DNA from: Macrostomum lignano
Lineage: Eukaryota
Reading direction: 5' to 3'
Assembly (NCBI GenBank): GCA_002269645.1
Contig: NIVC01001606.1
Coordinates: 103,876 to 167,875, forward strand
DNA length: 64,000 nt
The position numbers and the translations under genes were made by a program. Below the pieces are notes generated by a model. The model did no database searches and had not been told where the DNA came from. It was given only the letters and a program-made list of their open reading frames with translations. How positions within the stretch are numbered: position 1 is the first letter of the stretch; each line of letters opens with the position of its first letter. Of the stretch, positions 15,669-34,854 are shown piece by piece.

Positions 15669-18600
15669 TCAAGGCACAAAAATTGATTTTACCAAGGGAA
15701 TCAGCTTCAACAACGCGTACCCGATAAGTGCGGAACACAGAGTGAGCGGTGTAAATACAGTAGCCTGCACTGCGATCAAAACAAGAGCCAATAAAACCCC
15801 GAATGTTGACGAAATCGCGTCCACAAAAATATAACGTCTTCGCATCGAAAACTCTTCGTTAGGCATGGCTGTTCGAGCCCGACGCCTGATTAGTTGCAGA
15901 AATCGACAGCCGGCGATAACAAGGTTGAGAACTAGGCCAACGCTCTCAAAAATTGGAATTTTAACGCCGACTTTTCTTAAGCCAGACGCGTGGTGCATTG
16001 CAAACTTCAGGAATCTAATGCCATCGGCAGCTAAATGGTGTAGAAAACTCGGTACAAAGCCAAACAGCCTCCTCGAGTGCCTAACTAGCTGCAGACAGAC
16101 AACTCTGCCATAAATCAAGTAGTTGACAAAGTGCTCGCAATTGTTGAACGGAATGCTGTAATCTTCGCCTCCGCGCAGATCTCGAATCTTTTCTTGAATT
16201 AGATCCCAATTGAATTCTGAGTTGTGCACCACTTTCTCGATCTGACCTGGGCCAGTTAATCTGAGAAAGCCTTTAAACTCGTAGAATCCCATTTCGGTCT
16301 TCTTTACGGGAAATTCGTAAGTTACTCCATAGCCGGTAGATAAATTTGCATCCCAGCTCGTGATGACGAAGTGAACTTCTGCTTCCTTACCAGCTACAGT
16401 GCGCCTAAGAACGATGTGATCCAACGGTTTTAGGCTTCGTCCACCTACGATGGTTTCCGTGTCCTTCCTCTTGACTTTCAGTTCGTTCCTTAACAGCCCC
16501 AACTCCTCGCCGAGTAAGTTTTTGACTGCCTTGATGCCATCCTTTGAGAAGCGAGTTTTTATCCAGAAGCAGAAATCTTGGCTAGTCACTCTGCTGCCTT
16601 GCATTCCTAGGTAGCCCAGCCGATCGTCATCCGCATTTAGAAACGTATGATCAATCAGATTTTCTAGTTCTGCTTGGTTCCATTCTCGACAGCTTGCGTA
16701 CCGAACTCTTTGGAGGTGCTCATCTTCTCCAATGTCCAGCTTCTCAATGCGGACATGCTTGAAAACGACGTTGTTTTCATAGTATATCACTCTCAGCACA
16801 TCGTCGCAGTCTTCAACTTTACTGCACTCTTTGAGAAGAACATCGTGCGCGTAGAGAGACTTCGGCTTCTTCAAGAATTTGATGTGTCCTCTTTGGAAAC
16901 GATGTAGATCGTCTGCCGAGGTAACAGGAACGATGCACTGTTCCAAATTACTCTGGTGCTTGATGCTGCACCATCGAGCTAAGTCTCGGCCGCTGTTCCA
17001 CTGGAAGTTGTGCTGTCTCTCTCCCAGACGCGAGCGAGCCCTAAGAACCACCTCCTCAGTTGAGTAGAGAACCTCGTTCGAGACACAGTACTTCACAACG
17101 TAAACTGGCGTTGTTCTTAAATTTATTGTGTAGCTGCTCTCGGCGACGGAATTTTTTCCGAGCAACATAGAAGGTCCTACATTGTAGGAAATCGCGCTAA
17201 ACATCACTTGGTTTTTCATTGCCGGTGTACTAATGATTTTGGGACAATCGGTGACAACCAAGTGTTTGAAGACTAAGCCGTCTCTGGTGCTAATGACGCA
17301 CCCTTTGTAAATTTCATTCACACTCGTCACCTTGGTTACAGTGTAGCTGGGTGTTTCAAGTCCTCCACCGTACAGATGACAATCTCGGAAAATGTCGTTG
17401 TGAACGCAAAGCACAGCCTGTCTTTCGTATTTTTCGATAGCAATTTTTATTTCAAACAGGCAGTTATGAGCATTTTTGTTTACTCGACGGGCAGAGTACT
17501 GAATTTTAGTTATCAGAGCACCTGAGCCATCGCATCTGACTGCAGACACCACTGAGTATATGCCGTCATGCAGTATGATGTCGCCTGGATTCAACAGCTC
17601 TGGGCGAATGGTCTTACAGAGTGGTTGCGCAGTTTCTGTCGTGACGTTTGGAACCTGGATAGCTCGACAAAGCCAGTCTTCCCTGCTTAAGTTAGGATTG
17701 GTCAGGTGTAGACAGAAGGCAACTTTTCCAACCAAACGCTTGTAGGAAATATCCTGTATCATTCTGATTCGCCATTGTAAATCTTCACTAGTCAGACCAA
17801 TTGCAGCTGATTTTACAACTTGTACTGGTTTTTGAATTCTAGTTTCACAAATGTGCGCAGAGTTGATTATTTCTCTGTTCACGTGTCTACTCGACACTAG
17901 CATAGTTAACAAAACCTGCGACTCACTCGCCTTGACAGCATCTCTAACTTCTCCGTGTAATTCAATTTCACCGTCTGTCGCAAAGTTCAAATGGTCGCCA
18001 ACTTTCACTTCGTGAATGTGCTGATTAGCGGCTACAAAGATCGGTGCAATATTGTTCGCACGATTGCTAACCGACTGGGTCTTGCACCAAAATGCAAAAT
18101 GAGACGCCCTGTTGTCAATGACCGAGTGCTCTCGTTCGTTCAGCCGACTTCGAGCTCTTTGCACTACCACATCGGGTGGGTGGCACCAGGTTGGTGGGAA
18201 GTGACACTTCCAGCATTTCCTGCTCAGCGCCCCACCGGGATCCAATGAGTCTTTTCGAGCAATGAATTGAAATTTTTCTCTCATTACCTGGACAGAAAGC
18301 CAGTCTCTTCCGTAGTGAATGGCATCGATGGTGATGATCAACTCCTGCTCAGTGTCAACGATGCTCGTGTTCTCCACGATAATTTTGTGCGGCAGTTCAA
18401 AGTATCGGATTTCTAGTACGTCGCCAATGGCAACATTCTTGATTGATTTGCACGTGAGCCTCTCCTCGTAGCAATACACCCGTGGTGCCGTATCGGCTTG
18501 TGACTCGGTTGATTCGCAGGGCGCATCACAAGCGGTAGCGAGTTCGTCAGCTTCAACAGCATCACTTTCAGTCGTGTTTTCGGCTACAGCGGAAACGAAA

Positions 18601-34854: not shown

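Follow-up and report, generated by a model that had tools for sequence, protein, structure and literature searches.

A tandem gene cluster of the flatworm Macrostomum lignano encoding chains of LRAT/PLAAT-type modules with a single Cys-bearing module before a hydrophobic C-terminus

The PLAAT and LRAT proteins have been studied as small single-domain lipid enzymes involved in organelle clearance, in N-acyl-phosphatidylethanolamine and retinyl-ester synthesis, and in picornavirus entry. PLAAT1-5 (HRASLS/H-rev107) and LRAT (PF04970) have in common a permuted NlpC/P60 fold, with the catalytic His in the N-terminal strands and the catalytic Cys in the C-terminal NCEHF helix, and the known proteins, of ~160-280 residues, consist of one domain and a single C-terminal helix. 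The viral H-box/NC proteins (picornavirus 2A and giant-virus LRAT) have the same fold but are likewise single small domains. The LRAT family has been placed within the papain-like NlpC/P60 group (PMC10318531), and a transmembrane segment is required for the membrane action of PLAAT proteins (PMC9338259). In the present study, we analysed a stretch of 64,000 nucleotides from the flatworm Macrostomum lignano (assembly GCA_002269645.1, contig NIVC01001606.1, positions 103,876 to 167,875 of the forward strand; hereafter the window), in which a cluster of tandem genes encodes chains of related modules, with the catalytic Cys in the last module only and hydrophobic helices at the C-terminus. A literature search found LRAT described as a single-domain family, with no mention of tandem or multiple LRAT arrays; the architecture is real and apparently unpublished, within a well-known superfamily.

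Gene cluster and module architecture

Four related loci, all on the minus strand, were located within positions 15669-34854 of the window. An initial annotation made from the sequence alone had claimed three intact genes and one pseudogene on the same strand, and the open reading frames (ORFs) and a self-blastn comparison agreed with it. The genes, G1 to G3, and their parts are as follows, modules being lettered from the N-terminus.

31885..34854, minus strand: G3, an uninterrupted single-exon ORF starting with ATG, 989 residues, modules A-B-C-D-E-F and a hydrophobic tail
23385..27524, minus strand: G2, an uninterrupted single-exon ORF starting with ATG, 1379 residues, modules A-B-C, A'-B'-C' and D-E-F and the tail
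26310..27377, minus strand: extra A-B-C unit of G2, residues ~50-405, the most degraded copy, with NKSGFILWC
23805..24227, minus strand: module F of G2, NNCEHL with the Cys kept and the catalytic His replaced by Asp (SEVDFILTEW)
18706..18750, minus strand: exon 1 of G1, 15 codons, MHSAQDFLARRLTAM, matching the N-terminus of PAA47239.1
18624..18705, minus strand: intron of G1, 82 nucleotides, with the splice signals GTAAGT...TTTTAG
15669..18623, minus strand: exon 2 of G1, 984 codons and a stop, modules A-F and the tail, with the motifs NRASHF, NSGRDL and NNCEHF
20230..22670, minus strand: pseudogene, a 5'-truncated copy holding the end of B', then C', D, E, F and the tail of G2

The lengths of 1379 and 989 residues given by the initial annotation were correct, whereas its G1 of ~985 residues was the stretch without exon 1. 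The long ORF of G1 (15669..18479, with an in-frame extension upstream) has no in-frame ATG, exon 1 supplies the start, and the complete protein has 999 residues, equal in length to PAA47239.1. Stop-free frames of ~940-1380 codons in DNA of ~44% guanine-cytosine content are not chance, because about one in 21 random codons is a stop, and the matches of the products to Pfam LRAT at E values of 1e-13 to 1e-15 also argue against chance ORFs. Among the M. lignano proteins in the database, PAA65928.1 is identical to G2 at 1372 of 1379 residues, PAA47239.1 is ~99% identical to G1, and PAA66167.1, PAA65929.1 and PAA47238.1 are 97-99% identical to G3. The database calls all of them simply "hypothetical protein" or "LRAT domain-containing protein", and no paper mentioning the genes was found in the literature search. 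By tblastn of the window no further copies were detected outside the four loci, and an Rfam scan of the window gave no match.

Each protein has a disordered N-terminus, modules A-B-C-D-E-F and then three or four hydrophobic helices. With 41% identity, G1 and G3 align colinearly, and blastp and hidden Markov model (HMM) matches indicated that G2 has the same layout, with its first ~370 residues present once more at the N-terminus. In G3, residues 1-50 form an acidic, disordered N-terminus, after which the following parts were distinguished.

34285..34704, minus strand: module A, residues 51-190, LRAT domain, NTASDF, Ala at the Cys position, triad His-Tyr-Ala
33850..34284, minus strand: module B, residues 191-335, diverged, five strands and then three helices, no catalytic motif
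33610..33849, minus strand: module C, residues 336-415, truncated and beta-only, ending in LCVHND..DC.L.GGG
33169..33609, minus strand: module D, residues 416-562, LRAT domain, NSSRDF, Ser at the Cys position
32740..33168, minus strand: module E, residues 563-705, probable LRAT fold, VKSEDFCCW, Ser at the nucleophile column
32320..32739, minus strand: module F, residues 706-845, PLAAT-like, His742 and the NNCEHF Cys, directly before the hydrophobic tail
31888..32319, minus strand: C-terminal anchor, residues 846-989, an amphipathic helix and three hydrophobic segments, with the basic loop RKRQADLAMP

The whole proteins matched Pfam LRAT with 54.0 (G1), 50.7 (G2) and 58.5 (G3) bits against a cut-off of 24.3 bits, G3 in three stretches (E=1e-15). 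When single modules were scanned, matches were obtained on A, D and F only and none on B; in G3, module F alone scored 33.1 bits (E=7.8e-8), and modules A (18.3 bits, E=0.003) and D (21.7 bits, E=2.6e-4) were below the cut-off. In profile-profile comparisons by hhalign with 43 canonical NNCEHF-bearing LRAT domains from relatives outside Macrostomum, the probabilities were 99.3% for A (119 columns), 99.4% for D (117 columns), 97.2% for F (114 columns), 85.1% for E (109 columns), 24.7% for B (102 columns) and 4.3% for C (66 columns), and A against D scored 99.3%. By these profile scores, A, D and F are LRAT domains and E is probably one. Module E is in register at every landmark, with Y-H-x-A-I on Y-H-H-A-I, V-x-S-x-D-F-C-x-W on N-N-C-E-H-F-x-x-W, and also Y(E)N.

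An alignment of 10 sequences was used to build an AlphaFold model of G3, which had a mean predicted local distance difference test score (pLDDT) of 65.9, with most module blocks at 65-88 and the B block mostly at 55-86. In this model each module has five strands and then two or three helices, and C has five strands without long helices. A Foldseek search with the full model, in which the matching module was not specified, returned PLAAT3 (7zom) as the only credible match from the PDB, at probability 1.00, with a target template modelling score (TMt) of 0.64 over 123 columns. In the viral library, likewise without specification of the module, a Catovirus LRAT was found at probability 1.00; this is the one credible viral structural match, and nothing suggests a viral origin of the flatworm genes. 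Matches to the coronavirus main protease and to phage proteins had root-mean-square deviations of ~19-25 Å and were set aside as noise.

The poly-LRAT/PLAAT chain put forward by the initial annotation thus holds for A, D and F, and probably for E, but is not shown by sequence for B and C (25% and 4%). Its expectation that the N-terminal modules would be NlpC/P60 folds agrees with the assignment of A and D as LRAT at 99% profile-profile probability. The motif string GD..H..HYG..RARSRL..N....F..WC that it ascribed to the modules in general fits only the A/D modules, two per protein and three in G2, whereas B, C and E have diverged much further and lack most of it. Single-pass HMMs of B, C and E scored at most 14 bits against other LRAT modules, and the convergence of iterated HMMs of these three on LRAT modules was discounted, because the profiles may have drifted in a database of 130 sequences. 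A model of the B and C fragment (residues 191-415) made by AlphaFold from the single sequence without alignment had a pLDDT of 47.

The chain repeats a unit of three modules. The A-B-C block is colinear with D-E-F up to the "VVHN" strand (336 columns, 99.3% by hhalign, with 0.2% for a reversed-sequence control), although this score is driven by A against D. The match of B-C to E-F alone is colinear and weak (P=0.0017, 15%, 207 columns), with B showing a weak colinear match to E, and no match was detectable between C and the beta part of F alone. Module C matched the N-terminal ~40 columns (the strands) of A at 85%, the rest of A being unmatched, and looks like a module truncated before its helical half. 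Because of this colinearity, and because the extra block of G2 is exactly one A-B-C unit, the proteins are best described as two (G1 and G3) or three (G2) tri-module repeats, the last of which ends in a complete catalytic module. The modules accordingly fall into type 1 (A/D), type 2 (B/E) and type 3 (C/F). At the end of C, at residues 400-422 of G3 (window ~33589-33657), the motif LCVHND...DC.L(Y/E)GGG...P is conserved in all paralogues; no substitution of His405, Cys412 or Pro422 is seen in the paralogue alignment, Gly416 and Gly417 are almost invariant, and the His405/Cys412 pair sits in a module without the NCEHF helix.

Catalytic residues, membrane anchor and proposed function

NNCEHF is present in module F of G1 and G3 and NNCEHL in module F of G2 and the pseudogene, and both are absent from all other modules. 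The confinement of the catalytic Cys to the membrane-proximal last module had been claimed by the initial annotation, as had these motifs and NRASHF, NTASDF, NSGRDL and NSSRDF, all of which are present. The triad columns of A and D read HHA and HSG in G1, HYA and HSS in G3, and -RK, HHG and HFS in G2. Their nucleophile column thus holds Ala, Gly, Ser or Lys and varies freely among paralogues; A and D often keep the second His (HHA, HHG) but not the Cys. Since the C113S mutant of PLAAT3 is lipase-dead (PMC9338259), "pseudo-catalytic" is a reasonable label for the Cys-less modules of these genes.

Among the modules F, the first catalytic His (equivalent to PLAAT3 His23) is present in G1 (EVHLIV) and G3 (EVHFVI) and is kept, as His742, in all paralogues except G2. 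The pseudogene F (20424-21179) also has Asp at this position (SEADFILTEW, compared with EVHFIVTEW elsewhere). The second triad His (equivalent to PLAAT3 His35) is replaced in F by Tyr, 'vtY' being aligned by hhalign on the canonical 'VIH'. Of the active terminal module of the initial annotation, therefore, the Cys is retained, but Tyr stands for the second His and, in G2, Asp for the first.

The mean pairwise identity among seven paralogues was 0.34 for A, 0.35 for D, 0.35 for E, 0.34 for F, 0.28 for C, 0.22 for B and 0.20 for the tail. Modules A, D and E are conserved like F, which indicates that Cys-less modules are under constraint comparable to that on the catalytic one, and to judge from this alignment the non-catalytic modules are probably functional. 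Such equal conservation of all modules is also expected under selection for binding, and would fit proteins in which no module is catalytic and which serve as membrane-anchored scaffolds or as lipid- or protein-binding adaptors made of dead LRAT folds. The Asp in place of the F-module His in G2 and its partial copy, the Tyr at the second-His column in all modules F and the loss of the nucleophile in five of six modules point in the same direction. However, N-C-E is invariant in every complete aligned F (mostly NNCEH, with YNCEHM in P0006 and NNCENF in P0009) despite decay elsewhere, and His742 is lost only in G2. We thus regard the wholly non-catalytic alternative as unlikely.

The profile of module F matched PLAAT2 (2e-9) and PLAAT3 (1.6e-7) in the PDB, the matches to PLAAT2, PLAAT3, PLAAT4 and LRAT-chimera chains spanning 2e-9 to 9e-4. 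By analogy with these enzymes, F would be expected to have PLAAT-like phospholipase/acyltransferase activity. The placement of the LRAT family in the papain-like NlpC/P60 group (PMC10318531), together with weak Peptidase_C97 and Amidase_6 matches in F and some relatives, raises the alternative that F is an NlpC/P60- or PPPDE-type cysteine peptidase with a protein or lipopeptide substrate. By sequence and by structure, however, all the best matches are PLAAT or LRAT lipid enzymes, in which, as in the flatworm proteins, the NCEHF helix leads directly into membrane helices; a peptidase or amidase function therefore appears very improbable.

The last ~140 residues of G1, G2 and G3 form an amphipathic helix and then three strongly hydrophobic 19-residue segments, in keeping with the membrane anchor reported by the initial annotation. 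In G3 the Kyte-Doolittle peaks lie at residues 892-910, 936-954 and 966-984. A conserved basic loop, R(K/R)R.A...MP..E, separates the hydrophobic segments, and basic residues flank the helices; the AlphaFold model has four long helices here at low pLDDT. By hydropathy there is no N-terminal hydrophobic signal. The whole soluble chain would then be cytosolic and, as for PLAAT and LRAT, F would lie at the surface of the membrane. Two copies of G3, PAA47238.1 (871 residues) and PAA65929.1 (865 residues), end in ...GLGTKWINMVVRGFRPWFHCADDH and have no hydrophobic tail; they may be tail-less variants, or artefacts of gene models or frameshifts.

As in PLAAT and LRAT, a hydrophobic membrane segment directly follows the catalytic helix in the flatworm proteins. 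Unlike PLAAT and LRAT, these proteins have five to eight nucleophile-less LRAT-type modules in front of the Cys module, an anchor of three or four helices, Tyr for the second triad His in F and, in G2, no first His. We take LRATD1/LRATD2 (FAM84A/B) and EGL-26 of Caenorhabditis elegans to be LRAT-domain proteins that act without, or not only through, classical catalysis; likened here by description, they presumably have a single LRAT domain and no module array and are related to the flatworm proteins only by that domain.

Considering these results, we propose, with a probability of about 0.5, that the genes are a Macrostomum-lineage LRAT/PLAAT expansion encoding a membrane-held PLAAT-like lipid acyl-hydrolase/transferase with a non-catalytic LRAT-fold arm. 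In the proposed scenario, a small tail-anchored enzyme would have been enlarged into a protein of ~1000-1400 residues. The Cys of F, activated by His742, would attack an acyl ester of a phospholipid at the membrane surface, and the thioester would then be hydrolysed (phospholipase A1/2 activity) or the acyl chain handed to an acceptor. We take the modules upstream of F, five to eight in number, to be a non-catalytic arm, because they have lost the nucleophile and yet are conserved like F; they may bind lipids or partner proteins, or space or regulate the catalytic head. G2, given the Asp in its module F, may be a full pseudoenzyme.

Several points weigh against this proposal. Enzymatic activity and membrane location are predicted from sequence and model, and only hydropathy informs the topology. 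In another assembly, some of the annotated G3 copies end without the hydrophobic tail. The second triad His is missing from F and, in G2, the first as well, which leaves the catalytic competence of F not assured. For modules B and C, sequence does not demonstrate an LRAT fold, the support being the secondary-structure pattern and colinearity only, and with a predicted template modelling score (pTM) of only 0.43 the AlphaFold model does not give the arrangement of the modules.

With six to nine folds strung together, the Cys only in the membrane-proximal one and the others conserved, the proteins suggest that the LRAT fold can take on a second use, as a building block without catalysis, and in them the role of a Cys-less LRAT domain can be studied in a natural setting. 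Macrostomum lignano is amenable to RNA interference and transgenesis, which brings this function within experimental reach.

Relatives in bivalves and a hemichordate

An exhaustive HMMER search of 1.84 billion representative proteins gave 98 matches. Six matches below 1e-30 and one at 2.2e-30 were all M. lignano paralogues or alleles, and full-length relatives were found only in this species, in which at least 11 clusters at 50% identity were counted with partial relatives included. The other named matches were uncharacterised proteins of the bivalves Potamilus, Mercenaria, Mytilus and Pinctada and of the hemichordate Ptychodera flava, and many further matches were contigs of metagenomes or sequencing runs. 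Pfam assigned LRAT to 85 of 89 more distant relatives, Peptidase_C97 to four and Amidase_6 to three. The undescribed, lineage-expanded family proposed by the initial annotation is thus tandemly duplicated and uncharacterised, has full-length relatives only in M. lignano, and does not coincide with an already characterised single-copy family, but multi-LRAT proteins also occur in bivalves and a hemichordate.

The proteins of Potamilus (KAK3603616.1), Mercenaria (XP_053378500.1), Mytilus (XP_076105740.1) and Ptychodera flava (XP_070565188.1) have up to nine LRAT modules each. Like the flatworm proteins, they combine one Cys-type module and transmembrane helices with many Cys-less NxSxxFxxWC modules resembling A/D (E 1e-30 to 1e-8). 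The order is reversed, however: in bivalves an N-terminal His-His-Cys LRAT module is followed by two to four transmembrane segments and then by four to eight modules of the A/D subtype. This layout of a His-His-Cys module, transmembrane segments and a His-His-Ser array was noted for P0008 (Potamilus), P0011 (Mercenaria), P0013 (Mytilus), P0043 and P0121 (Ptychodera). By single-pass HMM, modules of the B/E and C types could not be recognised in the bivalve and hemichordate multi-LRAT proteins.

In contrast to the degenerate flatworm modules, the array modules of bivalves, up to eight of them consecutive, are strictly His-His-Ser, and over 321 related modules the triad states were HHS in 121, HHC in 51 and HHA in 16. 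This strict retention suggests, from the aligned sequences, that the Ser variants are functional and possibly catalytic. Flatworms, bivalves and hemichordates might accordingly share an undescribed poly-LRAT membrane class, with one Cys-type domain and a selectively maintained Cys-less array that has a biochemical role of its own, for instance in serine-type transfer of acyl groups, in the binding of lipids or acyl chains, or in passing substrates on to the Cys site. We advance this only tentatively and think it doubtful; if true, it would set the proteins apart from a decorated PLAAT, as a new type of machine that remodels membrane lipids at several sites.

A further reading takes the Ser modules (D and E, and the His-His-Ser modules of bivalves) to be active serine-type acyl-hydrolases/transferases, which would make the proteins enzymes with several active sites. 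The excess of HHS over HHC fits this view, triad retention being unusual for dead domains. In the window genes, however, the nucleophile column is occupied by Ala, Gly, Ser or Lys and frequently there is no second His (HHA, HSG, HYA, HSS, HHG, HFS), and PLAAT3 C113S is inactive (PMC9338259); we therefore consider a multi-catalytic enzyme improbable. The conserved His-His-Ser arrays of the bivalve relatives, which raise the question of a serine-type LRAT chemistry, are the most interesting lead of the present study.

Duplication, assembly differences and surroundings of the cluster

The pseudogene shows 94.8% nucleotide identity over 2454 nucleotides to the G2 region 23198..25627 by self-blastn, so that the duplicated segment of G2 comprises its 3' half and ~190 nucleotides of 3' flank. 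The first ~630 codons are missing, a 4-bp ATAT insertion near 21170 shifts the frame, and the copy reads as two ORFs (21157..22677 and 20424..21179). The ratio of nonsynonymous to synonymous substitution rates (dN/dS) was feasible only for G2 and this partial copy, other paralogue pairs being too diverged for dS; at 0.45 (dS 0.056) it is of little informative value, one of the two lineages being live and the other dead. Two ORFs of 203-206 residues on the plus strand (21343-21963 and 24300-24911), antisense to the pseudogene and G2, are duplication copies of each other and most likely spurious.

Flanking DNA is 98.9-99.4% identical to a contig of GCA_002269645.1. In contig NIVC01004522.1 of the same assembly, positions 4443-8988, which correspond to window 20338-27870, hold one G2-type gene instead of G2 and its partial copy. 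The 3' half of this gene is 96.4% identical to the window pseudogene compared with 94.1% to G2, and the gene is split into two ORFs (474 and 930 residues) near 6110-6212 of NIVC01004522.1. Either alleles or homeologues are structurally polymorphic here, or the difference between the two contigs is an assembly indel. Taken together, the tandem array, the partial duplicate and the assembly differences reflect ongoing unequal duplication.

The initial annotation had regarded the proteins as a sensor/decoy array coupled to an effector in immunity or membrane surveillance. On this view, pathogen factors directed against PLAAT-like proteins, for instance, would be sensed or drawn off by the dead modules, and the last module would be the effector that attacks membranes. 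The tandem duplication with a fresh pseudogene, the 35-45% identity between neighbouring paralogues, the number of M. lignano clusters and the structural differences between assemblies are compatible with it. So is the occurrence of multi-LRAT proteins in bivalves, which often expand immune gene families, and so is the degradation of organelle membranes by PLAAT3 (PMC9338259). However, lineage-specific tandem expansion is common in many non-immune families, the upstream modules are steadily conserved without a hypervariable surface, and the literature search turned up no reports on expression or infection for these genes. Moreover, Pfam scans of the three window proteins, of nine full-length or multi-module relatives and of the 89 more distant ones gave matches only to LRAT and to models of the NlpC/P60 clan; signalling domains, whether immune, death-fold, TIR, NACHT or other, were not detected, which leaves the sensor/decoy claim without an accompanying domain. 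Because the immune scenario draws only on tandem expansion and divergence, we rate its likelihood as low, and no link to immunity is shown.

The near-intronless genes and a nearby reverse-transcriptase fragment led us to consider a viral or transposon origin, which was rejected because the tandem DNA duplication includes flanking sequence and no element hallmarks were found. The fragment lies just upstream of G3, in an ORF at 36120-36791 on the minus strand with an RVT_1 match (E=2.4e-7), and this retroelement remnant adjoins a tandem array of 15/62 nucleotides at 35814-36096. Further along the window, an ORF fragment with PAN and F5/8 type C (discoidin-like) domains at 53563-54216 on the plus strand is probably an exon of a gene for an extracellular protein, and is followed on the same strand, at 54549-55064, by an ORF with transposase-type helix-turn-helix domains (HTH_32 and HTH_48). 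The flanks at 1743-12517 and 40526-61332 are dense in long minisatellite arrays, in which many ORFs are repeat artefacts. Several of the arrays have extreme guanine-cytosine skew, and they include 51 copies of 31 nucleotides at 5548-7110, 48 copies of 30 nucleotides at 8296-9763, 84 copies of 17 nucleotides at 40526-41951, 110 copies of 14 nucleotides at 51865-53410 and 340 copies of GATA at 59983-61332.

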